The position numbers and the translations under genes were made by a program. This document shows positions 4,165 through 57,473 of a stretch of DNA of 64,000 bases, piece by piece. How positions within the stretch are numbered: the stretch's first letter is position 1; every line of letters starts with the position of its first letter. The notes beneath the pieces are model-generated. The model was not told the DNA's origin. It saw only the letters and a list, made by a program, of their open reading frames with translations, and did no database searches. This DNA is from Podarcis bocagei (taxonomy: Eukaryota), in assembly GCA_964188305.1 (NCBI GenBank), contig OZ076901.1. One strand, written 5' to 3'.

Positions 4165-4570
4165 AACATAGGAAGCTGCCTTAACACTGAGTCAGAACGT
4201 TGCTCCATCTAACTCAGTACTGCCTACACTGGCTGGCAGTGGCTCACCATTGTTTCAGATCAGGGATCCCTTCTCCAAGCCCTGCCTGGGGACGCTGCCA
4301 GAATTTGAACCTGGGACCTTCTGCATGTAAAACTGATGCTTTACCACTGAGCTATGGCCCACCCCTTAAAAATGAATCAAGATGCTAGCCCTCATGGTGC
4401 TGAACTAAGGGCACACAGGAAGCTGCCTTATTAGTCCATCTGGCTCAGGACACTGGCTGGCAGCAGCTCTCCAGGATTTTAGGCAGGGAGCCTTGCCCAG
4501 CCCTACCTGAGGATGCCATTGGCGATTGACACCTTCTGCATGCAAGGCATATGTCCTGCCACTCAGCTCA
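4165..4570 (-). mobile_element. Tandem pair of tRNA-Ala-derived SINEs
   Basis: Head GGGCCATAGCTCAGTGG...TTCAA.T.C.GGCA (tRNA-Ala-UGC-like), body GCTGCCAG.CAGTGTAG, tail AAGGCAGCTTCCTATGTTC; two units plus linker. Confidence 0.75.
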
Positions 4571-35589: not shown

Positions 35590-36538
35590 GCAAGTAGGCT
35601 GCAAATTGAAAAGGCAACGAAAACTCAAAACAGAAGGTGATAGTCTGAGTAAAGAGGGGAGCTACTTCTCACAACTTTGCAAACACCTCTGCTCCTCATT
35701 GGCAGCTGCTGCTAATCTATATTTAAAACACCCTCAAATTGCCTTTCGGCTGCCCAGCAGTGCTGAAGGCGTCACGTGACGTGACACTGTGCATTTATAA
35801 GATAATAAATGAACGTTCAGAAATAAAACAGGAGGTCTGAAGAACAGAGTCCAGAATGAAGAGCTTTGGAAAACGAACGCTGGCTTTGCATCCCCCCCAA
35901 GGAGAGCAGTGAAGTCAACTTGTCAAAGGAACAAGGACTCAAAGGTCATTTAGTCCAACCCCCTAACAATGTTTATTTTGTTGAACTACGTCAATGTGGC
36001 TTTTTAAAGAAAAGTTATGACTAAAAGTGTCAAGTGGCTGGTGGCAGTATTTAATTTTTCCTTTTTTATTTTGATACGTCAGTGACTTAGAAAAGATCTA
36101 CAAAGCGTTCCACTATCCTGGTTATTGTGGGGGCAAATGTCTTCTTTTTGTGGGGAATGGGAGAGATAGTCAAACAGCGGCTCTTAGGCAATTAAGTACT
36201 TGGGAAAGTAGCTTAATAGCATGAGGTCTCATTGCTGTATAGGATCCTGGATGACACAGTCATAGGTATGACTATTACCCTAAAATCCCAGTGGAAAAAT
36301 TACTCCAGTTGTATAAGAAATTTAGTGGGCCGCTATATGGATTAGAGAACTATCTCCATCGATCTTTGCACCCACCAGAAGTGAGATGGCTGGCATTAGG
36401 ACCCCTCAGAAATTTTATAGAGGCTAAACTCTGAAGCAGGGAGGGGTGAGCTTTGCAAGTCTGATTGTACAAGCAGGAAAGTGCAAAATGCATGAGCTTA
36501 GAAACAAGATGGGTATGAGGTGGTAGGCTGCGTCTTAC

Positions 36539-36568
36539 CTTATTGTCTCTTCTACCAGCCGGTCAGAG
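36539..36568 (-). CDS. GOSR1: GOSR1 30-nt micro-exon (probably exon 7)
   Basis: (N)SDRLVEETI(S); long C/T tract + TTTCAG acceptor, AG|GTAAGA donor; exactly fills the gap in the SNARE motif. Confidence 0.93.
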
Positions 36569-36671
36569 CTGAAACAAAAAAAAAAAAGGGGGGGGGAGAC
36601 ATTTAAAAGAAATAGAATTTTATACATCACAATTTCTATACAGTAGAAATATATATTATATAAAATAAATG

Positions 36672-36747
36672 TCCAGTAGCACCTTAGAGACCAACTAAGT
36701 TTGTTCTTGGTATGAGCTTTCGTGTGCATGCACACTTCTTCAGATAC
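36672..36747 (-). mobile_element. Penelope-like element terminal-repeat fragment
   Basis: Hammerhead core followed by ...TTAGTTGGTCTCTAAGGTGCTACTGGAC, a typical reptile Penelope end. Confidence 0.65.
36710..36747 (-). ncRNA. Minimal type-I hammerhead ribozyme motif (Penelope-derived)
   Basis: Minus strand GTAT-CTGAAGA-A-GTGTG-CATG-CACAC-GAAA-GC-TC-ATAC: stem I GTAT/ATAC, core CUGANGA and GAAA, stem II, UC cleavage site. Confidence 0.75.
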
Positions 36748-37265
36748 GTGAATAGATTTCTATACACACAATCAGAGCAGCTTACGATTAAAGAAGGAAA
36801 GCAGAATGGCTTTTTTTGAATGTCACAGTAAACCATGGAATAGAGAACCAAATGCGGCCCCCCAGGCCTCTCTATCTGGCCCTTGGGACTCTCCCCCAAG
36901 GCCACACCTCCTCAGCAGCCCTACTTTGCAGCCTCCTGGAGTGTGTTTTTTGCCCGGTTGAAATGTCAGTGTGGACAATACTGAGCTAGACAAGGCAGCT
37001 TCCTGTGTTCCTGAATTAAACCTACACGATTTTCAGGAATGCAACTGGTGAGGACTTAAACACAAGAATGTCCCTCAAATCAGCTGAATTAAAAAATGAA
37101 ACGAAAAAACCTTGTCAGTCATCAACACTGTTCGGCGTCAAATAAGCAGCCTGCAACTTTTCTCACTGCTGCTAGGTACAAAGGCGTTGCTATCAGGTGG
37201 GTCTACATTGCCCAAGAAACAGCTTAAATTCGCCCCTCTCCATCACATTTTTATGTTAAACAATA

Positions 37266-37595
37266 CAGTGGTGCCTCACAAGACGAAAAGAATCCATTCT
37301 GTGATTCTCTTCGTCTAGCGGTTTTTTCGTCTTGCGAAGCAAGCCCATTGACGGATTAGCGGATTAGCGCTATTAGTGGCTTTTAGCGGCTTATCGGATC
37401 AGCTGATAAGCGGCTTAGCGGCTTAGAAAAAGGGAGGGGAAAGGGGAAAAAAACCCGCAGGAACTCGCAAGACATTTTCGTCTTGCGAAGCAAGCCCATA
37501 GGAGATTCGTTTTGCGAAGCACCTCCAAAACGGAAAACTCTTTCGTCTAGCGAGTTTTCCGTCTTGCGAGGCATTCGTCTTGCGGGGCACCACTG
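37266..37595. mobile_element. Tc1/mariner MITE with internal (TTAGCGG)n
   Basis: TA-CAGTGGTGCCTCACAAGACGAA...TTCGTCTTGCGGGGCACCACTG-TA. Confidence 0.85.
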
Positions 37596-39350
37596 TAACT
37601 TCAACATAACATACATAATCTAGAGAAGCTTATTTGAGTGCTTCTGTTTGCCCAATAACAATCAAAAGTTACCTGTTGGTAGCAATAACATGTTTCTAAC
37701 ACAAAGCTTACTAATAGCTCAACTGTCAAAAAATCCTTTCCATACACAAGTTTGGGATTTTGGAGGAAGAAATGGGTTCTGACCCCCATTGACTAATGAA
37801 CACTCTCTCTTCTATTTATCCCCCTGGCAGCTCTTCTGTGCTTTGTCAAACAGTCTGCAGGGGCCATCATCCACACAAGGCTGACCCAATCTATCAAAAT
37901 GTATCTCAGATTTTGTCTTCCAGTGTTCGAAGCGTCAAAAATCGCCTGCTTGGCCAGAAATGCTGGAAAAGCTACAAGGAATCTCCCCCTATGTGAGTTG
38001 CATGAATGGCAACGCAGGATACAGTGCACAATGTATTTGATATGGCCTGATTGCTACCACCATGGGAAGGGTTCAAGTTGTATGAATGTAAGGGCCTCCT
38101 GGATCAGGCCAAAGGGGGCTCATTTAGTCCAGGATCCAGATCTCAGTGGCCAACCAGGTGCCCCCAATGAGAAGCTCGCAAGCAGGACCCGGGTGCAACG
38201 TTTTCTTCCTCCCCAGACCCCAAACTCTGCAACTGCTTGCCTGCTGATTTCAGCCTGCTGCTGAGCTCCGAGGAAGAGCCCGCAAGCCCCCCCCCCAGCA
38301 GGATTCCGCCTCCAGCTTGCAGAGAAGGAGAGAGAGAGAGAATCTGCTCATTTGGTAAGTTTTACAAAAAGCTCCCCCTCGCTGCCGCCACCCCTCCCCA
38401 TCTCAGCGCACGGATTTCCACATTTAGCAGAACGCTTCCCTAAGGCAACATAACTTTTTGCAGAGTCCCCCCCCTCCCTTCCCACCTGCCCCATATTTTC
38501 TCAAAATATATTTAAACCCCTTGCAGGGAGCAGATGCCAAAGCAAGATGCCCACATTTTATCTAATTTAAGGAGTGGAATGGAGGAGTGGGGAGGGGGGA
38601 GAAAGCCAACAGATTCCTACTTTGGCACGCATGGCACCCCTGAGTAATATCATGGAAGCGCATGGAAAAGGGGTCGCAAAATAATAATCATACAGAAAAT
38701 AAATCAAGGATGGCACGATACAGAAAAGAGAACGTTGCCTCTTTGTATGAGTTACTGTTCTGAAGGTGTCTCCCCAATACAGAAACATAGGAAGTTAGGG
38801 TCCAACCATGTGAAGACCCACTGAAATCACTGGTCGTGACTAATACAGGTCCATTTATTTCAGTGGGTCTACTCTGGTGCAACCCAGGTGTTCATCTGAG
38901 GAGGGGAAATTCTCCACATGCTTTGGAACAAAACCAGCTTGGCTGAAAGTGGTGAAGTGTGTCTCTGGTTTTAGTTTAGATAACAAAGGGTGCGTCTAAG
39001 CCTGTTGGGAATTTCAGCAACACTCCTCTGGACACTCAAGGGTTAAAGCCCCTGCTTCGCATGCAGAAGGTCTCCTGAAAGCCTCTCCAGCTAAAATGAA
39101 GATTAGGCGACCTTCCTCTGTTTGGAACCCCAGAGAGCTGCTGCCAGTCAGTGTAGACAACACACAGCTAGCTGGACGCAGCGTAAGAGGTAGCTGAGTG
39201 GAAGAGCACCTACTTTGCATGAAGAAGGTAGGTATGTTTAAAGCACTCTGGTTACGCCACTTTAACAGTCATGGCTTCCCCCAAGGAATCCTGGGGACGG
39301 CGGTTCATTAAGCTCACAGCACCACAATTCCCAGGACTCAAAACAAACGA

Positions 39351-39592
39351 CAGTGGTACCTCGGATTAAGTACTTAATTCGTTCCGGAGGTCCGTTCTTA
39401 ACCTGAAACTGTTCTTAACCTGAAGCACCACTTTAGCTAATGGGGCCTCCTGCTGCTGCTGCACCGCCGGAGTACGATTTCTGTTCTCATCCTGAAGCAA
39501 AGTTCTTAACCCGAAGTACTATTTCTGGGTTAGCGGAGTCTGTAACCTGAAGCGTATGTAACCTGAAGCGTATGTAACCTGAGGTATCACTG
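39351..39592. mobile_element. Tc1/mariner MITE, same family, opposite orientation
   Basis: Reverse complement of the 43068 copy with an extra internal TGTAACCTGAAGCGTA unit. Confidence 0.85.
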
Positions 39593-40214
39593 TACAGTTT
39601 CCAGGGTTCTCTGTGAATTTTAAAGTGGAGTGCTTTAAAATGGATGGTATGTAATGGGCAAAGTTCGCAGGCTTGGGCCTCGTCTACCTGACCACACATT
39701 TTTTGATCGAGAATCTCAAAACAGAAGAATTAGGGGGGTTGCACTGCAGGGGGCTGGACTACATGACCCTTGGGGTTCCCTTCCAACTCTAGAATTCTAT
39801 CATTTCAGACAACTAATGGCAGACCTAGATTTCCAGGTGCCACGGGAGACGGATCACGTGCGCCGTTTGATCTGGAGCTGAAATGCTTTTGCAAAGTACA
39901 CAGGGCTGGTGACATAGCTCCAGAGAGAGGCCTTCTCAGTAGGCACCCACATTGTGCCTACTGATCAAGAGAAATAAACAAGCCCCATATGCACTAATGG
40001 AGTAATTAGCAGCAGCGTCAAGAAAGCTGGGTTTATATTTTCAAAAGGCAACAGGGCGGTGGGTGGGGAAGAGCGAGGAAATCCGGGCCGTTTTCCAAAA
40101 CCTTCCAAGGAGAGTTTGCGGCTCGCTCTTTTCCGAGGAAAAGCGCAAAGCTAGACTATGGAGCTCGCAACTGTGGGGGGCAGCAAGGACCACCACCATG
40201 GATGGCTTTAAGAG

Positions 40215-40563
40215 GTAAAGGGACCCCTGACCATTAGGTCCAGTCGCGGACGACTCTGGGGTTGTGGCACTCATCTCGCTTTACTGGCCGAGGGAGCCGG
40301 CGTACAGCTTCCGGGTCATGTGACCAGAATGACTAAGCTGCTTCTGGCGAACCAGAGCAGCGCACGGAAACGCCATTTACCTTCCCGCCGGAGCGGTACC
40401 TATTTATCTACTTGCACTTTGAGGTGCTTCTGAACTGCTAGGTTGGCAGGAGCAGGGACCGAGCAACGGGAGCTCACTCCGTCGCGGGGATTCGAACTGC
40501 CGACCTTCTGATTGGCAAGCCTAAGAGGCTCTGTGGTTTAACCCACAGCGCCACCCGCGTCCC
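40215..40563 (-). mobile_element. Sauria SINE inserted in a CR1-type fragment
   Basis: 11-bp TSD GGCTTTAAGAG at 40204-40214 and 40564-40574. Confidence 0.88.
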
Positions 40564-41134
40564 GGCTTTAAGAGAGGACTAGACAAATTCAAGCTGTCAA
40601 TAGCTACTAAGCATGGCAGCTATGCTCAGTCTTCACGGTCAGAAGCAGCAATTTCTCAATACTGGAAACCACAGGAGGGGCGACTTGTTCTTGGGCCCGG
40701 ATCCTGCTTGTGGGTTTCCCAGAAGTGGCACCTGGCTGGCCACTGTGAGAACAGGATGATGGGCCTTTGGCCTGATCCAGCAGGGCTCTTTTTGCATTCT
40801 TGAAATTGCTATGGGCCAGACCTTCTAAAACATCTAAAAATGGACTGATAAGGAATGGATTTGCCATGTGCTCCAAACATGCAACTTACCCCTCCCCACC
40901 CTCCTCCTTCTTCTTTTACCTGGCAAGACAGATGGAGAGCTGACAGAAACATTTCTTAAGCAACAACAACACGCCTCTTGGGAAGGGATGGCGTATAAAG
41001 ATGCTGATGCAAGCTAATGGCCCAGATCCAAGAACAGCAGCAGCCGGCGTCTTCCAAGAAAGATGAGCCAACACAAAGCACCTTGTTTACAGTCAATCGT
41101 GGCTTTGAAAAGGAATTCCCGAAGAAGTGCCTCA

Positions 41135-41510
41135 TAGAATCCTAGGGTTTGAAGGGACCCCCTGAGTCATCTAGTCCAACCCCTGGCCATGCAAGAATCA
41201 CAGCTAAAGAATCCCTGGCAGGTGGCCGTCCAACCTGTTTAAAAACAGCCTTTGAAGAAGAGTCCATCACCTTCTTTACTATCACACGGTTCTTCCTAAT
41301 GTTTAGTCGGAATCTCCTTTCTTGTTATTTGGATCCCTTGGTTTGGATCCTTCCCTCTGGAGCAGCAGAAAGCGAGCTTGCTCCATCTCCCATGTGACAG
41401 GCCTTCTGATGTTTGGCTCTCATGTCACCTCTCAGTCTCCTCTTCTCCAAGCTGAACATACCCAGCTCCCTCAACCATCCCTACCAAGGCTTGCTTTCCA
41501 GACCCTTCAA
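41135..41510 (-). mobile_element. CR1 LINE 3' fragment
   Basis: Reverse complement of the CR1 end (CATAGAATC...GTCATCTAGTCCAACCCC...CCCAGCTCCCTCAACC). Confidence 0.75.
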
Positions 41511-43067
41511 TGAGTTCAACAGGGTTGGCTTATTTCAAAAAGTGAAAACCCGGACACAAAAGTTGCAAAAGTAATCTGCAAAAAAATCAACACTTGCTTT
41601 CCTGGACATTTTTTGTTTCCAAGACATTTGTTTCTGATGGACAAATCCCAGATATGTCCAGGAAATTCTAGACATATGACAGCCCTAAGTTAGACCTCTT
41701 AGACTCATGTTCCCTTTTCAGCTGGCACCAATCAACTATGGCCCTCCAGTTCACTCTGTCTGGCCCTTGAAACTCTCCCCAAGCCACGCCCTTCTCCAGC
41801 CCCGTTCTGCATCCTGTGCATTTTTACCTGGCTGCCGATGTGTCCCCGAACCGTGACGGACCTCCATTCTCAGTTCGCTCACCATGAGCTCTGACAAGGC
41901 CGCACCTCATTTCAATCCTTTGCAGCCGTGGTTCATTTATTAAGCTTGCAATTCTATCCTGCTGTTTCTGCAACAGGGAGAGCACTTGCCAGCCGAGATT
42001 CTGCCAAGCCTGCCTGCCTGCCTGCCTGCAGAGATTCCTGGACACACCCAAGCCCCAGACCACCGCTCCAGCTTGGATGCTTGAAGGAAGACAATACAGT
42101 CAGGAACACTATAGATGCACAGAAGATGCTCCCACTCTCATCCTCACACACTGGGTGGAGCAAGAAAGTGACAAGTACATTAACTGTAACCCCATAGTCT
42201 CTGAAATACGTTATCTCTCTTTCAGAAATTGAATGTGCAGGGTGAAGAAATACACTTTGCCCCCTGTTATTGCCTGGTGCCACCAGCTGGTGTGGGCACG
42301 TCCTTGGGGCCGTCAGAGCTCCAGGGCTTAGCGCTGCAACTCCTGAAACAATGTAAGTGATACATCATCCCACTGCCATCCCAAAATATCCACAAAGCCG
42401 ACCAGCGACAATCCTCATTTACGTGTTGTTGGAATGTACGGCTTTGAGTGAGGATGTTTCCATGCAGCACGATGAAGGCAGAGCCCGTGATTTGCAGAAG
42501 GGAAGTTACAAAGCTGCTAACGGCTGGAGATGAAAGGCTGCTTTCAAGGCTGAGCCACTTTCGTTTGGAGAGCAGATGGAGGGGAGCGCTGCTCTCCTGC
42601 CCAAGCAGAAGGCTGCAAAGGAGAACTAAGATGGAAAAAGAACTGTGCTTAAGAATAAAGGAGCAGCTTGCAGGGATCGAACCATGCAACCTGGCACTGG
42701 GGATAAGAGCTTCACTGATGCTCAGGAAATTGAGGTGGTGCTCCAGAAACCTGCTAAAGGGAAAGAAACTACAGGAAGGCAGCAGCTGGAGGGAACGACT
42801 CATGGTTTCAGTTGTCTCTACAAAAATGCACAGAGTATGGGAAACAAACAAGATGAATTTGAGCTCTTAGCACAGGATGGCAAATACGACCTGGTAGGCA
42901 TTACTGAAACCTGGTGGGATGAGACTCATGACTGGAATGTAGGAATGGAGGGGTATAACCTGTTCAAAAGGAATAGACCAAACAGGAAGGGAGGAGGAGT
43001 GGTGTTGTATATAATGCATGTGTACACTTGTGAAGAAATACATGACCTGGAGCATGAAAAGGAGATA

Positions 43068-43279
43068 CAGTGGCACCTCGGGTTACATACGCTTCAGGTT
43101 ACAGACTCTGCTAACCCAGAAATATTACCTCAGGTTAAGAACTTTGCTTCAGGATGAGAACAGAAACCGCGTGGCGGCAGGAGGCCCCATTAGCTAAAGT
43201 GGTGCTTCAGGTTAAGAACAGTTTCACGTTAAGAACGGACGTCCAGAACGAATTAAGTACTTAACCCGAGGTACCACTG
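43068..43279. mobile_element. Tc1/mariner (Tigger-like) MITE
   Basis: TIR CAGTGG(T/C)ACCTCGGGTTA...TAACCCGAGGTACCACTG; TA TSD. Confidence 0.88.
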
Positions 43280-43916
43280 TATATGGGTAAAAATTGTAGG
43301 AGAGAAAAACAACAGTGACTTTACTGTGGGTGTCTGCTATAGACTGCCAAGCCAGACTGAAGACTTGGATGATGCCTTATGAGAGCAGATTACCAAACAC
43401 TAAAAAAAGGAGAGAAATAGCAATCATGGGGGACTTCAACTTCCCCAGTATCTGTTGGGACTCAAAGTCTGCCAAGAGTGTAAGGTCTCACAAATTCCTC
43501 CACTGCATCACTGACAATTTCATTTCCCAGAAGCTGGAAAAACCAACAAGGGGAATCATCTATTTTGGACCTGGTCCTCACCAATAGGGAGGAACTGACT
43601 GATGAAGTGCTCAGAAACTTGGGAGGAAGTGACTGTGTTCTCCTGGGTTTCAAGATACAGAGGCAAGAGAAACACGCACTCTGGACTTTAAGAAGGCCAG
43701 TTTAGAAAAGCTGAAGAAGCTCCTGGGTGTGATCCCGTGGTCAGAAATATTCAGTGAGAAGGGAGTCCAAGAAGGATGGGAGTTTCTGCAAGGAGAAATA
43801 TTAAAGGTCCAAATGCAGATAATACCAATGAGAAAGAAAAGTGGGAGGCATCTAAGGAAACCGGTGTGGCTGCATAAGGAGCTTATAAATGACCTGAGAG
43901 TTAAGGAAGGCATGTA

Positions 43917-44142
43917 TAGTGGTACGTCGGGTTACATACGCTTCAGGTTACAGACTCTGCTAACCCAGAAATATTACCTTGGGTTAAGAACTTTGCTTCA
44001 GGATGAGAACAGACATCGTGCTCCGGCGGCGCAGCAGCAGCAGGAGGCCCCATTAGCTAAAGTGGTGCTTCAGGTTAAGAACAGTTTCACATTAAGAACG
44101 GAGCTCCGGAACAAATTAAGTACTTAACCCGAGGTACCACTA
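43917..44142. mobile_element. Tc1/mariner MITE, same family
   Basis: TIR TAGTGGTAC...GTACCACTA; TA TSD; excision restores CR1 codons ATG TAT AAG AAA TGG. Confidence 0.88.
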
Positions 44143-44249
44143 TATAAGAAATGGAAGAAAGGGGAAGTATACATGAGTAGCCAACAGTTGCAGGGAGAAA
44201 GTCAGGCTGGCTAAAGCTCAGAAGGAGCACCCTTCCAACTCTAAGATTT

Positions 44250-44495
44250 AATAATAACAATAATAATAATAATAAAGTAATTTATTATTTATACCCCGCC
44301 CAGCTGGCTGGGCTTCCCCAGCCACTCTGGGCAGCTTCCAAGAAAATATTAAAATACCGTAAAACATCAAACATTAAAAGCTTCCCTAAACAGGGCTGCC
44401 TTCAGATGTCTTCTAAAAGTCTGATAGTTGTTGTTATCTTTGACATCTGATGGGAGGGCGTTCCACGGGGCGGGCGCCACTACTGAGAAGGCCCT
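44250..44495 (-). mobile_element. L2 3' end
   Basis: Same family; further fragments at about 51410-51760 (+), 60080-60370 (+) and 61780-61897 (-). Confidence 0.8.
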
Positions 44496-44681
44496 CTATC
44501 ATTCCATGAACCATTCGATGTGAACAGAGATGCACTGGGTGGAGGGGGGGTAAAGAGGAAGTGTGGGAGGGGTCCTATAGGATTTGGGGGGACAATCCCC
44601 ATCCCAAAATGCAAAGCCACTTCAAGTCCTCCAGTTAAGACAGGGATGGTGATTAGCGTTGGTGCAGAGGTCACTCTAAGC

Positions 44682-44804
44682 TAAGGTTACCAGATTTTTT
44701 TCAACGAATCTGGGGACACTTTTCAACTTTAATGGGTTTTGTATGGGGACTGATTTGTAAATCCAGGGACTGCCCCTGGGAAACGGGGACGTCTGGTAAC
44801 CTTA
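44682..44804. mobile_element. hAT MITE, 123 bp
   Basis: TIR TAAGGTTACCAGA / TCTGGTAACCTTA; perfect 8-bp TSD CTCTAAGC (44674-44681, 44805-44812). Confidence 0.88.
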
Positions 44805-46849
44805 CTCTAAGCCGGCCTACTCAAGCTGGTGCCTTCCAGATGTTTGGGAGTTGTAGTCCAAAACATCTGGCGGGCACCAGATTTCATTTATTTATTCATT
44901 CATTGAATTTATATACCGCCCTAAACCCAGAGGTCTCAGGGCGGGTCACAGAATAAAATCAAAATATAAAGCCACAAAATACATAATAAAAATAACAACA
45001 ACAACCCAATAACCCCCCAAAAACACAGTTTAAAAGGGCTGTGCTTTTGGGGGGGAGTGTTATAAGCATCTCCACTGGTCTTCCAAAGTGACAGCTCTGT
45101 TTTACAGCGGCTCAGCACTCCCTCTTCATCCTCTGCGCATGGGAAGTTTATTGCATTTAAGCTGCGACTCCTGCACTGCAGAGGGTTGGACTAGATGACG
45201 CTTTGGGTGTCCCTTGCAACTCTACACGATTCCCTGTGTGTAAGAAGAAGGGGGAGGCTATGCACTCTCCTTGGGGGTGGGGAGGTGGGCCCAGGCTAGC
45301 CTATCTGCCTGCTCCCTGGCGCTGCCAAAGCCAGGATCCTTCCTCCCTCCTCCCTGGAAGGCCAGTTCCTGGAGAGACTGACCCTCCCATGTAATTGCAG
45401 CAGATTCCCCCAGGAACCGGGATAAATGAACTTAAAAACAAAACTGGGCGGGCATTAATGTAAGTCATTACCACCAACCACATCTGTCAGAACAAATTCC
45501 GGTAATTCACTAATGGACTATGCAAAGCTTCCCTCTCTCTCTCTCCCCCACTCTTACCCATTTCAGCTTTTTCACAGCCTTGCAAAGCTCTGAGCCAGAG
45601 AAATCTGCTGGAAAGGAACCACCGTTGAGGAGCTCTATAGGGACACCCACCCACATAAAAAAATAGATTTGTAATTAAGAATAATTCAAAGGAAACGGGG
45701 CGGGGGGAGGCACTGAGGCCTTCGTTAAGACAAACTAAGAAGAGAGAAAGGTTTAAAGGAGGCTTAAAAAAAGGAAAATATTCTTATCAGAATGAATGTT
45801 AATCAAAAGAAGGCATGGGGAGGCGTTAAGGATGCTATCGTGAGAATGATGGGAAAATGTCAGCCTGCCATTAGGAATGAGAGATATTCTGCGCAAATAG
45901 ACACAATTTTGCCCTCTGCTTTTAATTAAAATATAAATATGCATGTATAGAGATAGAGGCATTGACACACACACACACAGCCTAAACCTCATAGGGGCAG
46001 TAATAATAATAGCAATAATTAAATTTATTGCCCGCCATTCACCAGCAGGCCCCAGGATGGGTTACAAAAATCTAAATGTAATTAACTTTTCATTAAAAAA
46101 ATAATTGGTATACTAATTCTGTGAAATAAAATTTAAGTTTAACTTGCAAAATAAATCTGCTAAGGTGCATCCAATAATATTCAAACAAGAATGTCAACGC
46201 AGGCACAGATGCCTCAGTAACCAGCACATACCCAGAGCCCAGAAGAAGTTGGACTCATCCATTATGCCGCACCAGCAGAAATAAACACTGAAAACAGCCT
46301 TTCCAGAGCATTTCACCTAAGTCATGCCTCCTTCCAACCACTCCTTCCCTGCAGAATCAGATGCTTCCAAAACAAAACATCCTGCCTAAGGCAATTCTCA
46401 TCCTCCAGGGAGGGGGAGATCAGGTTTAGAAGCTCACTTAGAAAGGTGCTAAATGGCTGGCCTTTGCCCCTCCCTCACTGTGATTAGCAAAACAGGAACA
46501 AATTAAGCATCTCAGCAGAGTTATGCAAAACAAAGTAGGCGCATTTGCTCAATGACTAAGGATCTCAAAATCCAGCTTTTACTGATTTGCTTCTCTCTCT
46601 CTTTTTAAATTAAAGCATGGAGTAAACAACTATCTTCTAAGGATCGGAAACTTACTTTTTTCTCTTGTTTTGGTTGGGTTTTTTTAAAAAACAAACATGA
46701 AGGCACTGTCAGACTGACATCAGATTCCACGCTTGGGCAAGAGGCAGCAGAGGCAAGTGGTACATACATTTCAAGGGAGAATAGTAATAAGATCTGGATG
46801 CTGGAACTTTTTTTTTAAATAGCCAAGAGCCATCCTCACCAGGGGAAGG

Positions 46850-47420
46850 AACATAGGAAGCCTACCTTATTGGTCCACCAGGCTCAGGACTGTCTGAACT
46901 GACTGAAAATAAACAAAGATTCTAGTCCTCATGGCTCTGAATAAAGGACTGAAATAGGAACCCAGGAAGCCCCCTAAGGGTTCTGAATTAAGGACTGATT
47001 TAAACAGGCAGTTGTCCTACGCTGAGTCGGCCCTCGGGTCCATCTAGCTCAGTATTGTCAGCATTAACTGGGAGCTCTCCAGAATCTGAAACAGGGTTCT
47101 GCCCCAGCCCTACCTTGAGATGCCGTTGGGGATTCAACTTGGAACCTTCTGCATGCAAAGGTGATGTTCTGCCACTGTGCTGCAGCCCTTTCCCTAGAAT
47201 CATGATGCTAGTCCTCATGATTCGAAATAAAGAGGTGGTTTAAAGAGGAGCAGAGGAAGCTGTTTTCTGCTGAGTCAAACCACTGGGCCATCTAGCTCAG
47301 TACTGCCTTCCCTGGCTGGCAGCAGATCGCCAGGGTTTCAAGGAGGGACATTCCGAGCCCTACTTGGAGATGCTGTTGGGGACTGAACCCAGAACGCCCT
47401 GCATGCAAAGGGAGAGTTCC
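46850..47420 (-). mobile_element. Tandem array of tRNA-Ala-derived SINE units
   Basis: Two near-complete units plus partial units; linkers at about 46915-46960 and 47195-47250. Confidence 0.7.
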
Positions 47421-48431
47421 CCGACATCCAGCTGCGAATCCTTTCCTCCGTGCAGGGAGTGAGCACCGTGACCTCACCACACCGCAAGCAGAACGTTCCT
47501 AAAGACACAAGTCATCCTGCCAAAGCTTCAAGGAACATTCGCCTTATTGCACCCTTTCCAAGTTACAAAAAGCAAAGCAAGAAAGAAATTCAATGGGGAA
47601 GCAGCTGGAGAAGAATGTGTGTGTTCTGCAGTTCCAACAGCAGCCCTTCTTGCTTTCCTACACTTAATTTATTTTTTATATAGAAGAGTTTATTTTGGTT
47701 CAAGCCACCGGAGCATCAAAAATAGCAAAGCACCAGGGTGATTCAAAACTCTGCACAGAGAGAGAGCGAGAGAGAGAGAGAAGGGGAGAGAGAGAAGGGG
47801 GGGGGGGAGAAAGAGAAGCACCTTGGCCATCTGGGAGAGAACAGGCAGGATAGGACGGCAGCTTCATTTAGTGATCTTCCTAGTTGAGCGAGCGATTTAG
47901 AAGTGCCAAACTGGACTTCTTTTATCAGAGCTCTTAAAAGCTACATTGCAATCTGGCAAGTGGAGACTCCTCATCCAGTGGGAGCCCTTTGCAGACTCTG
48001 CAGGCAGGACCGAGGGTGGGTGGGTTGGAGGCAGAAATGCCATAAGGATAAAGGAATTTGGGGCAAAGTGCAGCCAGACTCCTGTGCATGGGAGGTGCCG
48101 GTGAAACCTACACTCTGTTTATTTACGTATTCCATAAAATTTAGAGCCCATTGGCAGAATACCTGATCTGCATGAAGATGATCCTGGGTTCAAACTTAGG
48201 AAGGGTCGAGGGCAATCTCTGACACCCCGAGTCACTGCCAGCTAGTGTGGGCAAAGCTAAGTTTGATGGAACAATGGTCTGTCTCGGTAGAAGGTGCTGC
48301 CTCCTCAGCTCCAAGCTTGCACACCTCCCTCTGTCAACACCAGGGTTCCAGTAACTAATGAACAAGGTGTACCCTGTAAGGCTGAGGTCTGCCACACCTG
48401 GTCTAAACAATGCGCATTTGCTGTGGGTTTA

Positions 48432-48768
48432 AAGGTAAAGGGACCCCTGACCATCAGGTCCAGTCGCAGACAACTCTGGGGTTGCAGTGCTCATCTCGCT
48501 TTACTGGCCGAGGGAGCCGCCGTTTGTCCACAGACAGCTTCCGAGTCATGTGGCCAGAATGACTAAGCCCACGGAAAAGCTGTTTACCTTCCTGCTGGAG
48601 CAGTACCTATTTATCTACTTGCACATGACGTGCTTTCAAACTGCTAGGTTGGCAGGAGCAGGGACTGAGCAACGGGAGCTCACCCCGTCGCAGGGATTCG
48701 AACTGCCAACCTTCTGATCGGCAAGCCCTAAGCTCTGTGGTTTAGACCACAGCGCCACCCGAATCCCA
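48432..48768 (-). mobile_element. Sauria SINE
   Basis: 14-bp TSD TTGCTGTGGGTTTA at 48418-48431 and 48769-48782. Confidence 0.88.
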
Positions 48769-49658
48769 TTGCTGTGGGTTTACGATCAAGCAAATAAATA
48801 CGTATTGCCATTAGGGAGGCTTGCCCTGGAACGCCACTCCAAGGAAGTCTTGCAAGGATGCCATTTCTCTCCCCTCCACTGGCTGGAAGCTCACCTCCTC
48901 TGACATGAACTGCCAACCGAAAGGAATGCCAAGGGCATAACCAGATTTGTCTGCACCCACCCTCTATTACCCTTGCCCTGCCCGTGATTTGGGGCTTGGA
49001 ATACACAAAATACGATGAAAATCTAATAAAGCAAATGTTAAAGAGCGTGGTGACCAGGCGCTCTTCGTCCTTATGAACTGGCAGTCGTAAGAATCAAACA
49101 GGGAAGAATATAATAGGATCAGTTTGTACCAGCCTTTGCAGAACTAATGCTCTCTGGGTGTTTTGGACTGCAACTCCCATCAGCCCCAGACAGCACTGGT
49201 CAGAATAAGCAAATAAATAGAAGGGGGGACCCTCAAGCCTGGGCCTCTTTAGGTGGCCCTCGGGAATCTCCCCAGACCACGCCTCCTTTCTCAAGACCAC
49301 ACCCCTCCCTGGTCACATCCTCCCATGACTGCTTCTGCCTGGCTGGGAAAAGTGTCCTTGAACTATGGTCATGCCTCCTGGGTGGAGAATAGAGAGAGGA
49401 GGGTGTACAGAATCTGCACCCGCTGCTTCCCCCAGAAGGTTGCTCAGGAAGGAATGTGGCTCTTGGGATGGAGAAAAAAAAAGAATTCTCAACTCCTGAA
49501 CTACTGGGTTGCAGTGGGTCAAAGCCACAGCACGATCACTGTACAAATAAACAATTAACAAAAAAAGTGGGTCCCCAAAATGCTTTTTGGGCTAAAGGTG
49601 GAACCTCAGGTCTCAATTGCTGAAAATTGCTATTTAAGTTCTTGTGCTCTGATATATA

Positions 49659-49917
49659 CCATATTTTTAGCTCTATAAGACTCACTTTTTCCCTCCTAAA
49701 AAGTAAGGGGAAATGTGTGTGCGTCTTATGGGGCGAATGCAGGCTGCACAGCTATCCCAGAAGCCAGAACAGCAAGAGGGATTGCTGCTTTCACTGCGTA
49801 GTGATCCCTCTTGCTGTTCTGGCTTCTGAGATTCAGAATATTTTTTTTCTTTTTTTCCTCCTCCAAAAACTAGGTGCGTCTTCTGGTCTGGTGCGTCTTA
49901 TAGAGCGAAAAATACGG
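49659..49917. mobile_element. Tc2/pogo-like MITE, second copy
   Basis: Highly similar to 12282-12539; TA TSD. Confidence 0.82.
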
Positions 49918-50275
49918 TATATAGGCCGGGAGAGAAAACAGTTCTATGAGTTCTTGTGTTCTAGTATATACACAGAAAACTGCTGCATGAGTTCTTGTGT
50001 TCTGATATACAAAGCAGTGACCATTCTGCATGCGCCCAATTAATGTGTGACTGCTAACATGCACACCACTTTTGGCCCCGGAAGGTGGCGGAATGGGCTG
50101 GCATTTGCAATGACCAGGAACGCAACCCATATGCAAACAGGGAGTTGCCAGCATATATAAAGAGAAAACTGGTGCATGAGTTACTGTGCGTGCATGAGAG
50201 CTCTCTCTCTTTCTATATATATATATATATGTAAAACTGCTGTACTAGCTCTTGTGCTCTGATTTATATATATAT

Positions 50276-50288
50276 AAATCTACGAAAG

Positions 50289-50350
<62 letters not shown>

Positions 50351-50618
50351 CTTTCGTAGATTTTCACGGGTACAGGAATGCAGGTTTTGGTATCTTCGGG
50401 TGTCTTCCCGTGTAAGTTCCTCTCTGCCCAGAACGTTGGAGGCTATACACCACACCCCCTCAACAGTATTTATAGGAACTCAAACACTGAGATCCTGCTC
50501 TGTTCTAGTAACAAGAAGCCGAAAGCACCAGCCTGAAGATGACGAGTGAGACCTCGTTAAAAACGTCGCCTAGACACCCCAACTCTTACACGGGAAGACA
50601 CCCGAAGATACCAAAACC

Positions 50619-50655
<37 letters not shown>
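50276..50655. mobile_element. Penelope-like remnant with inverted repeats, embedded in (TA)n
   Basis: Perfect 39-bp inverted repeat (50378-50416 / 50585-50623), degenerate CTGAAGA...AAACGTC hammerhead-like core at 50531-50570, TA tracts on both sides. Confidence 0.6.
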
Positions 50656-50657
<2 letters not shown>

Positions 50658-51782
50658 TAAATCCCTTGCCAGGGAAAACAGATGAAAGAAATGCACGTAC
50701 AGACATAAAAGACCGGCTGTTATCTGTACTAATGATGCTGAAGCAAGCCCACTCTCTCTACCGCATCTGCCTTTCATGCTGGTTATTTATAAATACCAAC
50801 AACAATAGTAATGATAATAATAAGGAAGCCCAGGAGAGCTCCTTTGCCCCTTGGAGCATCGAGCGCACGCACTCACAGGCACGCAGAAAAACCCTAATTA
50901 AGCTGTTCAAGGACCTGCCTGGCTCCGTTATGTAACTGTGCTCCTCCATCACAGCCATTGTTTCCATAAATGGGAACTCTGAGGGGGGAGACGGGGAGTG
51001 GGGGGTGGCCCCACCGGTCAATATAGCAGGGCATCTGCCAGGGGCCCCCACCCCACCAAGGGGTCTCACACTGGACTTTCTCCTCATACTTCACCAGTCT
51101 GCTACCCTTCACAACAGTGGTGGAGAGGAGAAGAATCAGTAGACGTCACTTCCTGCTGGTTCCTGTACGCAATGGGCATGGATGGCTAAAAAAACCCTCA
51201 CTATACCAATGCATATTCCACATGGCCACTGCCCAGGAAAGCTAAACCCTGGAAGAAGCCCTCAAGGACCAGCAGTCCTGATGGGGCACCTGTGCTGCTT
51301 GTGGAGAACCAGGTCCCTACGTTATCCCACTGCTTGCCTCTGCTGCCTTACTGGGCCAGCCTCCCCAGACCAGCTTCCTGCTTCCAGTGGTGGGCCATGC
51401 TTCTAAGCCATGCTCTGCTTGACGGCCATTGACCTGTGACAGGGCCTTTTCAGTGGTGGCTCCCTGTTTGTAGAATGCCCTCCCTTGACTCGCCTTTACT
51501 CTAAGAGACACCAATGCCCAAATGTTGCAAGATAAAAAGATAAGAAGATCAGGCCAATGGCCCGTCTAGTCCAACATTTTGTTTCCACAGCGGCCCGCCA
51601 GATAGCTATGAAAATGTTTTAAATGTTTGATGTTTTACTGTGCTTTTCATATTTTGCTGGGAGCCACCCACAGTGGCTGAGGCAACCCAGTCTTATGGGT
51701 GGCATATAAAAAGTAAAATAAAATAGTAATAATAATAATAATAATAGTAATAATAATAGTTGTTATTTACCCTCCATGTATA

Positions 51783-52146
51783 GGGGTGCGGGTGGCGCTG
51801 TGGGTTAAACCACAGAGCCTAGGACTTGCCAATCAGAAGGTTGGCGGTTCGAATCCCCACAACAGGGTGAGCTCCCGTTGCTCGGTCCCTGCTCCTGCCA
51901 ACCTAGCAGTTCGAAAGCACGTCAAAGTGCAAGTAGATAAATAGGTACCGCTCCAGCGGGAAGGTAAATGGCGTTTCCGTGCGCTGCTCTGGTTCGCCAG
52001 AAGCAGCTTAGTCATGCTGGCCACATGACCCGGAAGCTGTCTGCAGACAAATGCCAGCTCCCTTGGCCAGTAAAGTGAGATGAGCGCTGCAACCCCAGAG
52101 TCGGCCATGACTGGACCTAACAGTCAGGGGTCCCTTTACCTTTACC
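51783..52146 (+). mobile_element. Sauria SINE, full length
   Basis: 16-bp TSD TTACCCTCCATGTATA at 51767-51782 and 52147-52162. Confidence 0.9.
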
Positions 52147-53229
52147 TTACCCTCCATGTATAAGTCCAATCCTCTTTTAGAGCCATCCAAATTGGCTTCT
52201 TTCATAGGGGAGTTGCTCCACGCCCCCCTGAACACATTGGGCTGCCCTTTTCTGAACCTTTTCCATGTAGGGGGAGCAGAACTGCAGGCATTCAGGGAAG
52301 GCCACATAGCAAGGCCTGACGCCAAGAGCTTCCACCCTTCAGAGGTAAACCAGGTCTTCATGGAGAGAAGGCAGGCTTTAACCACCCTTGGTATTCTATA
52401 CTGCCCCCCAGAAAAAAAAACACTTTACACATACAAATGAATTCCTTCAGTGCTGATTTAGGAAATTACTCCCCCCCCCCCCGCCAAAGCCATTAAGCTT
52501 CAGAAGCTCTCAGGGCTACACTCTCCAAACACACACACACACAGAAGTGAGTGCTGAGCTGACAAACTCATTTCCTCTTAGCCCAGCACTTTGCAGGATG
52601 AAGCAGCTGAAGCCTGTCCATTCATCACCCAGCCCTGTGCCTCCATTTGATGGAAAGCCTCGCCCGCTACAGGAGGGAAGGCCGTGGGGGGGGGGGGAGG
52701 AGAACCACACAAATGGATGAATTATTTACTCTGCTCGCCTAAAAGGGTATTAAGCTGGGGAAAGTGGGGCAGGGAAAGGGAGAGGTGCTTTGCAGAGCTG
52801 GTCATCAAGGAAACCCAGCAGGCTGCTACACTTATTACTCATACGCAGGATGGGCAGAGGAGCATCTCTGCCTGGGCATCCCTAATGCAAACAAACATTC
52901 GGATTCCAACTCAACTGTGGAAGGGGCTGCCTCAAAAGGGGGTGGGTGGACTCTCCTTCAGCAGAGGTTTCCAAACAGGGGTTGGACGGTCATCTGTCAG
53001 GGATGCTCTGCTAGATTCCTGCACTGCAGGGGGTTGGACTGGACGACTCCCGGGGGTCCCTCCCAATGCCACAATTTCTGGGGTTTACGCCACCTTCACT
53101 GGTGACCTGTTTGTTTCAGAGAGCAGTCTGGAGCGCCAGGTGTAATGCTTAAGGCTCTAACTTGGCCTTACTTAACTGGGTGCCATCCAGATGTTCTGGA
53201 CTATGGCTCCCACCAGCCCAAGGCAGCAT

Positions 53230-53620
53230 GCCAAGCCACTGGCCCCTCTAGCTCAATACTGTCAACACTGACCGGCAGCAGCTCTCCTGGGATTCAGGCA
53301 GGAGCCTTTCCCCAGCCCTACTGGAGACACCCCTGGGGATTGAACCCGGGACTTTCTGCATGCAAAGGAGATGCTTTGGTCCTTCCCGTAACACAGAGAA
53401 AGACCCCAGTCTTCATGGTTTTGAACTAAAGGCTAATTTAAATAGGAACATTGGAAGCTGCCTGAAACGAAGTCGGTCCGTTGGCCCATCTAGCTCAGCA
53501 AGGACTACACTGGCCGGCAGCAGCTCTTCAGGGATTCAAGCAGGAGTCTCTCTCCCAGCCTTACCTGGGCATGCTAGGGATTGAACCTGGGACCTTCTGC
53601 ATGCAAAGCAGATGTTCTGC
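53230..53620 (-). mobile_element. Tandem pair of tRNA-Ala-derived SINEs
   Basis: Two units with linker at about 53385-53450. Confidence 0.7.
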
Positions 53621-55014
53621 CCCACCTTCCTCTGGGGCCGAAAATGGCATATGCCTCAGTGGCCGCGCGTGCAAAATGGGAGCTGCCTGTATACATCCCC
53701 TGAGGACCCTGCTCCCTCCCACCCGCCCACCCGATTCGGAATAGCCAGCCTTGACATCTGCACCCCCATCAGCAGCTACCATCTTCCTGCTTTGCTACTA
53801 CTACCTCCTGCAGGGAGAGGAGAAACGTGGGACCATCCCTGGAGGACACAGATTTATAATAGCTGGCCTTGACCCCAGACTCCTGGGTGGGGTGGGGAGG
53901 TTAAAGGGGGGGAATTGTTGGTTCAATGTGAATGATTTTGGGTCTAGGGGGAGGGTTGAGGTTTCGTTTATTTGTTAATTAGTGGATCTGAGTATCGCTT
54001 TGTTTATTATTTCACTTTTTTAAAAAATGGATGTCATGTTATATGAAATATTAATGTATTACATGATTCCCCCCCCAACTTTCCCCCCATGGTACTATGT
54101 ATTGTATATCTTTCTTTTGTTGTAAGATGCTCGGAGACCTTTGGGTGACAAGCGATGAATCAGTCTAATAAATGAATATTTAGGGGCTTCAAGAACAGTT
54201 GCAAAACAACCCTGTGTGTTTGAAAACGAGCCCATTAATCTGTGGCTACCGGTAAGGTAAGCTCCTGAGTGGAAGCTGCCCAGCAGCTGCGGTCTCCTTT
54301 GCAAAGGCTGAAACAACAGAGCTAATTCCCGAGCAGAGAATCCGTCGACACACATCAAGGCTTGCACAGGCGTCGGTGGGGTTTTCCGATCCCTCCACCT
54401 GGCCTGTCTAAATCGAACGCTGCTGATGGGCCCCTTAGCCCTTCCGTGAGATGGAGCAGGATGGAAAATGCACTGCTTGAAAACATCATGTAGGGAAAAT
54501 GAAAGAGGGCCGGACCTTGGAAGGGTACCATCCAGCTGGCAATCAGGGTAGGTAGGGGGAACTACAGCTGAGGAATCAGTAACCACAAGGTATCTTCTAT
54601 ATGGTTTCAAAGAATGCAAGCACTTTAGCCTCAAAGCCTTCGATATTACATTTTTGTAAATGATAATAATAAAATAGGCAAAATGCTCACCGAGCTACAG
54701 GCAAAATACTCTTGGGATGATGCAAGGTTGCAAATCCCCACCATTAAAGCTGCCGCACTACAGCTGCTGCCTCTCTCTCTCTCTGCTCTGGGATAGAGAG
54801 CCCCACTCTCAAAAGGAAATTGCATTAGGAGCGCAAGGCTTTCCGGCCAGAAAAGCCCTCCAGTCCCATAGCAGCAGGGCCAGAGCTGCATCGATCCTGA
54901 CAAGCCACCCACCCAGAGTGCCGCAAACGTCCGCGGCAATTAAGCAGAGGAAGGCGGTGGGGCTGGGCCGCGAGGAAAGAGGGCAGTGCCTGGATCCCCG
55001 GGTCAAGTGAAAGT

Positions 55015-55475
55015 ATTCAAGCTGGCCACATGAGAAGTTAAAGAGAGTCTGGACAGAGAAGAGTTTCCTCCTTTTCTCATAACGCCAAAACTGGGGTGTG
55101 AATGTTGGAAGACTCAGAACAGATAAAAGAAAGTCCATCTTCTTCACACAAGGCTTCGTCAACCTATGGAATTCGCTCCTGCAGGAGGCTGTGACGGAGA
55201 CTAACTTGGATGGCTTGAAAAGAGGATTAGACAAACTCGGTGAGGGCTTTTGATGGCTCCGCTCTGACTCCACATTTGGAGACAGCGATGCTTCTGAATA
55301 CCAGTTGCTAGAAACAGCAGGAGGGGCGAGGGCTCTGGTGCCGGAATCCTGCTTGTGGGTTTCACACAATAGACAACACCTGGTTGGCCACTGTGAAAAC
55401 AGGATACTGGACTAAGATGCCTCCCCCCCCCTTTTGGCCTGATCCAGCAGAGTTCTTATCTTTTCATATTCTTAG
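55015..55475 (+). mobile_element. CR1-type LINE 3' fragment (second subfamily, CTTATG-like tail)
   Basis: CTATGGAATTCGCT...TTGGATGGCTT.AAAAGAGGATTAGACAAA...GGCCTGATCCAGCAG; related pieces at about 14630-14905, 21440-21820, 35330-35530, 40565-40800 and 62320-62480. Confidence 0.7.
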
Positions 55476-56690
55476 ACCTCTGGTGGAGGGGAGGGACTGC
55501 TCCTCTCATCTGGCCAGAAACGGATGGATGACTTCCTAAAACCCAAGGGAGGAAGGGAATCTACCTGTCCTCTATCAACCTGGAAAGGGAAAGGGAGGTT
55601 GTCTTCCACAAGATGGATTGAGAAAGTGTTTTATCAGCCTCAGCAGCCAACTCAATTAGCTTTCGGTCAAAAACCATATTAGAAAAGATGTGATGAATAG
55701 ATGTCTTTTTTTAGTCGTCAAGATTTGTGGCATATCCATCAAACTACACACACACACACACACATTTAAAGTCTTGCGCTTTCTTATTAAGACTATTCAA
55801 GATAAATGGGTCCTTGGGGACTTGCCTGACAGGTGCTGTACCTGCAAATTTGCGATACCTGCAAATTATACATGAGGAGCCACAATGCACCAGGAATCAA
55901 TCTGGCACAGAAATTGTCATAAACCATGATAAATGGGAGTTGCTCCTTGTTTGTCACAATGGGATTTGTGCCGAAGTTCCTCAAAAACAACGGAAGTAAA
56001 AATCCACAGGCTGCAGAATGTAGTATCAGGTGCAGAATTTCGCTTGCTGAGAACTTTGGCCTTTAAATATGAAGTTTCTAGTCCTTATAAGGCAGCCACC
56101 AAATAGCCCGCAGGTCCCCTATTCCTGCTCCACCCACTACACCACACTGCACGCTCCCTTCCTCCACCGACGTTTCAAAGCCAGAAGGTGCTCAAAGCTT
56201 CAGGACACACCTAACTAATAACATTTGCCCATTATCTATTTGCAATAGACATCCAGCAAGTGAAAATCAATGGATGCCCCTCCCTCAGCCCTTCCAAACT
56301 TTGCAAATGCCAGCGAGAGCCCCATGGGGAAATTGAGGGATGCACAGACACGGTTTCTCAGATTCCTTGGCCTATCACAACCAAGCAAAAATTTAAAAAG
56401 CCATTTCCTGTAAGAGGTTTTCATGCACCTTTGATTACAGAAAATAACAAAACTGCCTTCACCAGGAGCAGATATTGGAGAACCGCTCTTCTCGAGGGGA
56501 AGAGCGCCCCCTGGAGCCCACATGCTGCTATGGCTATTGCAGAAAGCATCCTGCTGCTATCACATTTCCCTGCAGATTTTTTTTAGGAATGCAGTTTCAT
56601 AAAATTAATCAGAAGCCTAATGAAGGCGCACACTGGAAGTGAAGCTGTGCAACAGGAAGGGACAGAAACATGCCTAAAATCTAAAACTGA

Positions 56691-56750
<60 letters not shown>
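56691..56750. repeat. (AAT)n microsatellite
   Basis: Direct observation. Confidence 0.95.
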
Positions 56751-56751
<1 letters not shown>

Positions 56752-57473
56752 TCTTCCCTGGGAAGCACATTATTTGTGTGTGCAGCTCTTCAAAGGCACA
56801 GTGAAATCAGTACATTGCTTTTTTAAAAAGCGTTTTCACTGATTTGCTTTTTCCCCTAACACTCTAAATAATGTAAGGGAAGTCTGTGTAGGCAACTGAG
56901 CTGTACATTGCTAAGTACCGCTGTAAAAAAATGACATTTGAGCAAGGGTGCCTTTGCCAACCGGTGGCCCTCAAGCTGTTTTGTACTACAGCTCCCATCA
57001 ACCCCAGCCAGCAGGGTCACATTGTCCATTTGGATGAATGAGACTGTGCCCCACCAACCAGCGCCTGCTCTCAGCCAGCCCCTCACCTGCCTGCCTTTCT
57101 ACTCATAACCAATCCAGGTTGCCCTGCCTGCCACCTTCCTCCTCTTTAGTCTCTGTGTTGTCCCTCCTAGAAATCAGCAGGATGGAGGACAGGTACAAAG
57201 CCAGAATTAGTTTTCTCTGGCTGTCATTGGCTCTGGCGCCACCTGCTGTTGGGCTCCCTGCTTTTTGCCTAACCAGGCCCAATGGGCAGTGCCCACCACT
57301 GCTTTACGGTGGCACAAGGCTCCTTGGCTTTTCTGGCTGCAAGAGTCTAACACGGCCGCCGCTGCCGCTGGAAACGTCCCCTGGATGTAGGAAACCGTGG
57401 GTTATGAGAGGAGGTATCGTGGGTGGCAAGTGGTTCTCTTTGAGCAATAATCCGATACAAGGCACAGACTTAC

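Follow-up and report, generated by a model that had tools for sequence, protein, structure and literature searches.

Penelope-like elements (PLEs) carry minimal hammerhead ribozymes (min-HHRs) with a helix I of 4-5 bp, a long helix II and a nucleotide between A9 and position 10.1 (PMC4209133). A conserved G10.1-C11.1 pair and palindromic positions 15.2-16.2 recur in these motifs as well, though all of these traits lay outside the descriptor used for their search (PMC4209133). They occur in thousands per genome, mostly as single dispersed copies, and reptiles (turtle, snakes) are among the hosts (Cervera & De la Pena 2014, PMC4209133). No cleavage was detected for a single min-HHR of a schistosome, and that of dimers and trimers was only weak (PMC4209133). 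General traits of the elements are strong truncation at the 5' end, a hammerhead placed close to the 3' end, and insertion into (TA)n or AT-rich targets (PMC8557442). For the Poseidon element of Anolis carolinensis (PAc), reverse transcription was found to start at a fixed internal site shortly past the hammerhead, in an AC-rich stem-loop, and insertion to take place in AT/TA-rich targets (PMC11167929). Without the PLE protein the PAc hammerhead did not cleave; insertion in vitro did not require the hammerhead, and RNA-seq showed no ends at its cut site (PMC11167929).

Self-cleaving motifs are also known from introns. A role in mRNA biogenesis has been proposed for the intronic hammerheads of amniotes (PMC6155905), and for Cpeb3 an intronic ribozyme has been documented that modulates its host gene (PMC10919898). 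Vertebrate non-LTR retrozymes reportedly derive from PLE pLTRs, and about 44% of the related retrozyme copies in Xenopus are intronic (bioRxiv 10.64898/2026.07.22.740005).

Here we analyzed a hammerhead motif in a stretch of 64,000 nt from Podarcis bocagei (contig OZ076901.1), in the following called the window. The motif is an ordinary member of an already known class, the PLE minimal hammerheads described in 2014. Positions 36672-36747, which contain it, are very probably a solitary, dead copy from a Penelope-like family of very high abundance, or from a short non-autonomous derivative of such a family, and most likely a neutral passenger of the host intron. The assignment of this family to the Penelope-like elements, whose full-length members encode a reverse transcriptase and a GIY-YIG endonuclease between pLTRs, is suggested by motif architecture and insertion habits.

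Architecture of the hammerhead motif

Direct reading of the minus strand identified a complete minimal type-I hammerhead motif of 38 bases at 36747..36710, the parts of which are listed in the table together with the surrounding features. The letters read there are exactly those given for this strand in the initial annotation, which had also described a catalytic core, stems I and II and a stem III reduced to AGCU. All of these were recovered, and standard numbering placed the cut at the same bond, 36714/36713, about 145 nt before 36569. Helix I consists of four Watson-Crick pairs (GTAT/ATAC), three of the four being A-U, and the next position is a C-C mismatch. Helix II opens with G36735-C36722, corresponding to G10.1-C11.1, and has 5 bp, extending to at most 7 bp if the entire palindrome pairs, while A36736 stands unpaired between A9 and G10.1. 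Helix III is replaced by the 4-nt palindrome A15.1-G-C-U16.1 (AGCU, 36718-36715); the monomer has no helix III because AGCU folding on itself would leave a 2-nt loop.

Coordinates of the features of the motif, the repeat copy and the host gene (all on the minus strand)
Feature	Position	Sequence or content	Basis
Helix I, 5' strand	36747-36744	GTAT	direct reading
Core box	36743-36737	CTGAAGA	direct reading
Bulged extra A after A9	36736	A	direct reading
Helix II	36735-36722; strands 36735-36731 and 36726-36722	GTGTG / loop CATG / CACAC	
Second core box	36721-36718	GAAA	direct reading
Positions 15.2-16.2, palindromic G-C	36717-36716	GC	
U16.1	36715	T	direct reading
C17 (H17)	36714	C	direct reading
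Helix I, 3' strand	36713-36710	ATAC	direct reading
Predicted scissile bond	after C36714, before A36713		standard hammerhead numbering
5'-truncated copy	36672..36747 (76 nt)	hammerhead followed by 38 nt of the element, with a small AC-rich stem-loop	
A/T- and TA-rich stretch adjoining the copy on its 3' side	36640..36671	likely insertion target	
Host intron	36569..57473 (20,905 nt)		donor and acceptor read directly
Upstream exon	ends 57474; donor GT 57473-57472	codes ...NNRRTELFLKEHEHLR	
30-nt exon	36568-36539; acceptor AG 36570-36569; donor GT 36538-36537	(N)SDRLVEETI(S)	
Next exon	starts 28437	codes IAMATKENMTSQRGMMKSIQSKMNTLA	
Terminal exon	about 24.9 kb	tail-anchor peptide	

The boxes, the type-I topology, a short helix I, a long helix II and the palindrome of min-HHRs were thus all found at this locus. 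Compared with the metazoan PLE min-HHRs (PMC4209133), the motif shares the type-I topology, the boxes, the U-H site, the 4-bp helix I and the G10.1-C11.1 pair, and likewise has an unpaired base after A9, a palindromic 15.2-16.2 step, no helix III and an occurrence as dispersed single motifs in large numbers. The architecture is identical; the copy in the window differs in being a 76-nt fragment without pLTR or ORF.

The window was searched with a structural descriptor that demanded a helix I of at least 4 bp, CUGANGA, an optional bulge, a helix II of at least 4 bp closed by G-C, GAAA, a palindromic spacer of 0-6 nt and U-H at the cleavage site. Over the 64 kb and both strands it matched once, at 36747..36710. 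Shuffles preserving the dinucleotide composition yielded no match with the strict version (0/300) and a single one (1/300) with 3-bp helices allowed. The loose pattern CTGANGA...GAAA...TH was as common in the window as in shuffles (11 matches, 7.2 expected), so that the signal lies in the helices and the G-C closure.

That unrelated intron sequence merely happens to hold the hammerhead boxes could be argued from the frequency of this loose pattern, from the fold of the bare motif, which is no more stable than that of shuffled sequences (z = -0.37), and from the Rfam hammerhead models. The initial annotation had pointed to these models as a check, and they left the motif unreported, with no match at the gathering score in the whole window (type I, HH9, HH10, II and III) and none at E ≤ 10 in the 301-nt slice 36600-36900. 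We read this silence as a limitation of the models where helix III is lacking; it was to be expected and is not counter-evidence. The shuffle statistics of the full descriptor, together with the membership of the 76 nt in a family repeated about 10^4-fold, refute a chance resemblance, the probability of which we regard as practically nil. The hammerhead motif is real. Searching the literature for the helix II/GAAA string in its exact form returned no match.

The repeat family and its copy in the window

The region 35700-37700 was compared with the raw reads of two bulk RNA runs carrying the same species label, and with the contigs of two related organisms that have roughly half of the sampled 31-mers in common with the window and are ~1.5-2% diverged in the unique flanks. 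Summed contig depth of the two relatives over the two bins of the motif reached 1.1-2.65 million, compared with about 35-130 in the single-copy flanks; it is not a copy number, and lies about four orders of magnitude above unique sequence. Matches of RNA reads stop sharply at 36672 (224-306 reads per run) and at 36747 (256-347 reads per run). Since 95-97% of the matching reads run on into unlike sequence, they derive from other loci, and dozens of contigs from other loci have matches that span just 36672-36747 and diverge at both borders. Upstream of 36747 the family copies have a common continuation (4/4 runs), which is missing from the window; this copy is therefore 5'-truncated and begins with the first base of helix I. 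Only at 36687 and 36702 does it depart from the family's majority letters, both positions lying outside the hammerhead. The 38 nt following the hammerhead are predicted to form a small CCAA...UUGG stem with an AC-rich loop at about 36710-36691. A Penelope-type minimal hammerhead that would need a dimer had been proposed initially, and this assignment is supported by the presence of the additional traits of published PLE min-HHRs and by the massive repetition of a family of 76 nt or more.

Within the window nothing usable was found when further copies of the hammerhead, of the 3' module or of the loose boxes were sought. No inverted or direct partner copies lie near the motif; this search turned up an unrelated element with terminal inverted repeats (see below). 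An exact-pattern scan of metagenome contigs for longer family members gave 0 matches. As a candidate target-site duplication we considered GTATAGAAAT, which occurs on both sides of the copy, but 8 and 30 nt off the borders and in low-complexity A/T-rich DNA, and is not interpretable.

In longer family members, the 14 nt immediately upstream of helix I would be complementary, with a 3-nt bulge, to CUGAAGA and the start of helix II, as judged from a 30-nt read consensus. Such a hairpin could mask the ribozyme core in full-length transcripts; the truncated copy in the window lacks this segment.

PAc, a squamate PLE, resembles the family in the window in having a minimal hammerhead near a fixed insertion end, AT-rich targets and an AC-rich stem-loop past the hammerhead (PMC11167929). 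In PAc, the ORF starts at stem II; the ATG precedes the cut by 26 nt, and the start of reverse transcription lies about 85-92 nt past the cut (PMC11167929). The copy in the window, in contrast, ends 42 nt past the cut (36713 to 36672), and the ATG of loop II meets a stop after 9 codons in the family majority (T complementary to 36702). Spacing and closure of the ATG frame show that the two are different families. Non-LTR retrozymes are likewise PLE-related, hammerhead-bearing, non-coding, high-copy and often intronic; they are built of tandem units that measure a few hundred nt, bear canonical type-I hammerheads and give circular RNAs (PMC7229834; bioRxiv 10.64898/2026.07.22.740005). Unlike these, the window holds a single 76-nt unit, one copy in 64 kb, with no tandem arrangement and no evidence of circles.

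The source of the copy might nevertheless have been a short retrozyme- or SINE-like unit that consists of the PLE 3' module only (the hammerhead and the region in which reverse transcription starts) and is mobilised by PLE proteins. The extreme abundance of the family, the reported origin of retrozymes from PLE pLTRs (bioRxiv 10.64898/2026.07.22.740005) and the early stop after the loop-II ATG, so that the hammerhead does not obviously open an ORF as it does in anole Poseidon, are consistent with such a unit. The common sequence upstream of the hammerhead fits a longer element, and strong 5' truncation of autonomous PLEs gives equally short copies (PMC8557442). We therefore regard a non-autonomous source as possible but rather unlikely; it would leave the verdict of a passenger unchanged.

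For the origin of this passenger copy, we infer target-primed reverse transcription, as for other PLE copies. Synthesis would have started at the fixed 3' end of the family (36672) in TA-rich intron DNA and would have stopped early at 36747, which would make the start of the copy at the first base of helix I an accident of the early stop. The hammerhead would be the minimal ribozyme of the family itself, carried along as a passenger.

Single-copy contigs of both relatives enter the repeat from both flanks, reaching in to 36686 on one side and from 36723/36724 on the other. Presence of the insertion at the same site in both relatives shows that it predates the split from them and is not very recent. 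Between the copy and the relatives no difference was found in the 40 nt covered by their unique contigs. At a flank divergence of ~1.5-2% about one substitution is expected in 76 nt, and the intact core is thus uninformative on selection. A divergence-based selection test was tried and set aside: 2 differences from the family majority and 0 from the relatives are too few to separate constraint from neutrality. Deep single-copy orthology of the kind seen for domesticated ribozymes was not found, the sequence being repeated about 10^4-fold and the two relatives being only ~1.5-2% diverged. The insertion is most likely neutral. The initial annotation had named a neutral recent insertion as its fallback; this reading comes closer to these results, but the insertion is not very recent, since two relatives share the site.

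The host intron and the activity of the motif

Four exons of the host gene were located by six-frame motif matches and direct reading of the splice sites, and their reading frames and GT-AG sites place the gene on the minus strand. Phases are consistent over the exon junctions (AA+C = Asn, AG+C = Ser). The exon 28356-28436 matches Pfam V-SNARE_C (E 2.4e-5), which was the sole V-SNARE_C match when the exons were searched one by one; the terminal exon gave weak SNARE-type leads in Atlas. We take the gene to be GOSR1 (GS28), a name that follows the human protein and the six-frame motif matches, and that is likely rather than proven. RNA reads over the 30-nt exon have the first mate on the plus strand only and alignments that are cut at 36569 in two bulk runs, which fits a minus-strand gene using this exon. 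The gene structure proposed at the outset, an intron of 21 kb and a 30-nt micro-exon with the motif in the sense strand of the intron, could thus be confirmed, and the distance from the predicted cut to the exon is 145 nt.

It had also been suggested that the motif nicks this intron and thereby affects inclusion of the 30-nt exon. A second hammerhead motif that could serve as partner in a dimer was not detected by the descriptor in the whole intron or in the 64 kb, on either strand. Pairing of helix I was predicted with a probability of 0.8-0.9 in the bare 46-nt piece only, and with 0.03 at most in the 76-nt copy and in native contexts of 151, 301 and 501 nt; these thermodynamic values take no account of folding during transcription, when helices I and II could exist for a short time ahead of their downstream competitors. 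In the predicted fold, the 5' strand of helix I pairs preferentially over 6 bp with the 3' part of the same element, and two copies are predicted to pair via the 14-nt palindrome of helix II, not via AGCU. No stable monomer fold was obtained (no helix III, helix I at 0.03 or below, z of -0.37). Loop-loop tertiary contacts make natural hammerheads fast at physiological Mg2+, and the motif in the window has no loops for such contacts.

Read starts or ends did not pile up at 36713/36714, with ~300 family reads per RNA run crossing the cut site. At steady state, most transcripts of the family are therefore not cut; the test flags ends that amount to at least a fifth of the local depth, so that minority cleavage would be missed. 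The crossing reads report on the family and not on the pre-mRNA of this locus, 0 RNA reads being found in the unique intron flanks 36571-36637 and 36772-37240. The evidence speaks against efficient cleavage at the locus, and we infer that the motif would be transcribed within the GOSR1-like pre-mRNA but would be inactive or nearly so, because the monomer cannot form helix III, the intron contains no second copy to pair with, helix I has four weak pairs that are out-competed in context and loop-loop tertiary contacts are lacking. The proposed nicking is not borne out by these observations, nor by the inactivity of published min-HHR monomers (PMC4209133), the dependence of the anole hammerhead on protein (PMC11167929) or the presence of the 30-nt exon in RNA reads. 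A real effect of the motif on the intron or on this exon appears very improbable.

An exapted ribozyme, modelled on the conserved intronic hammerheads of amniotes and on the CPEB3 ribozyme, would self-cleave the nascent GOSR1 intron and tune the use of the 30-nt exon, either as a monomer assisted by a protein of the host or of PLEs, or through AGCU pairing in trans with a family transcript. An intact sense-strand core 145 nt ahead of the acceptor and the retention of the insertion in two related species are compatible with such a function, but retention over about 2% divergence is also what neutrality predicts, and the intact core carries no weight. Family transcripts are abundant, a partner RNA acting in trans or a helper protein is conceivable, and assistance by protein has been described for the anole PLE hammerhead (PMC11167929); against this stand the absence of a partner in cis, a helix I that stays unformed in context, the missing tertiary loop contacts and the predicted joining of two copies by the palindrome of helix II rather than by AGCU. 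The intronic precedents, HH9/HH10 in RECK, CTCL and DTNB (PMC6155905) and the CPEB3 ribozyme (PMC10919898), are also self-cleaving motifs in the sense strand of introns. They differ in having a helix III, tertiary loop contacts, a single copy, conservation across classes of vertebrates, stability as monomers, recognition by Rfam and demonstrated cleavage (PMC6155905, PMC10919898), whereas Rfam is silent on the motif in the window, about 10^4 paralogues exist and conservation is seen across about 2% divergence only. Equivalent copies number in the tens of thousands, and many must be intronic, as are ~44% of the related Xenopus retrozyme copies (bioRxiv 10.64898/2026.07.22.740005). With no pile-up of ends family-wide and the 30-nt exon included in RNA reads, we consider exaptation highly unlikely. 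Still less credible is its most far-reaching form, in which the insertion is fixed in several lacertids and a PLE protein or a family transcript (via AGCU) activates the motif in trans, so that the intron would be cut 145 nt before the SNARE-motif exon and inclusion of this exon would track retroelement activity.

As a neutral passenger, the copy is of little importance alone, being one of very many solo Penelope-type hammerhead copies in a reptile genome, and an intact-looking sense-strand core inside an intron is what a young family copy shows by default, not evidence of domestication. If such a copy did cleave in a host transcript, retroelement expression would be linked to splicing of the host gene. 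This question of cleavage and splicing goes beyond a single locus and calls for a genome-wide scale.

Neighbouring features

Directly abutting the acceptor of the 30-nt exon is an unusually long pure polypyrimidine tract (36571-36596, minus strand), a run of C followed by a run of T, in which the read alignments are cut. The intron downstream of this exon (36236-36538, minus strand) has few RNA reads, with a depth of about 0.4-1.5. The difference from the unique upstream intron, which has none, concerns a handful of reads and permits no inference; it may reflect the order of intron removal.

Repeats of other kinds surround the locus. Three intervals, 35901-35967, 36839-36905 and 36973-37039, in which the contig depth of the relatives is 3- to 35-fold that of the flanks, are probably older, lower-copy repeats. 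At 4298-4354 (minus strand) Rfam reported a tRNA match of 34.2 bits that covers model positions 8-63 of 71 and misses the ends of the acceptor stem; it probably represents the head of a tRNA-derived SINE or else a tRNA pseudogene. The element with terminal inverted repeats mentioned above spans 332 bp (37264-37595) between TA dinucleotides and has inverted repeats of 24 nt (92% complementary) and internal copies of a 16-nt motif. It is missing at the orthologous site in both relatives, whose contigs join 37263 directly to 37596. This looks like a young insertion of a MITE-type DNA transposon, or an excision in the relatives. Pieces of the element are repeated about 10^4-fold and are transcribed in both orientations.
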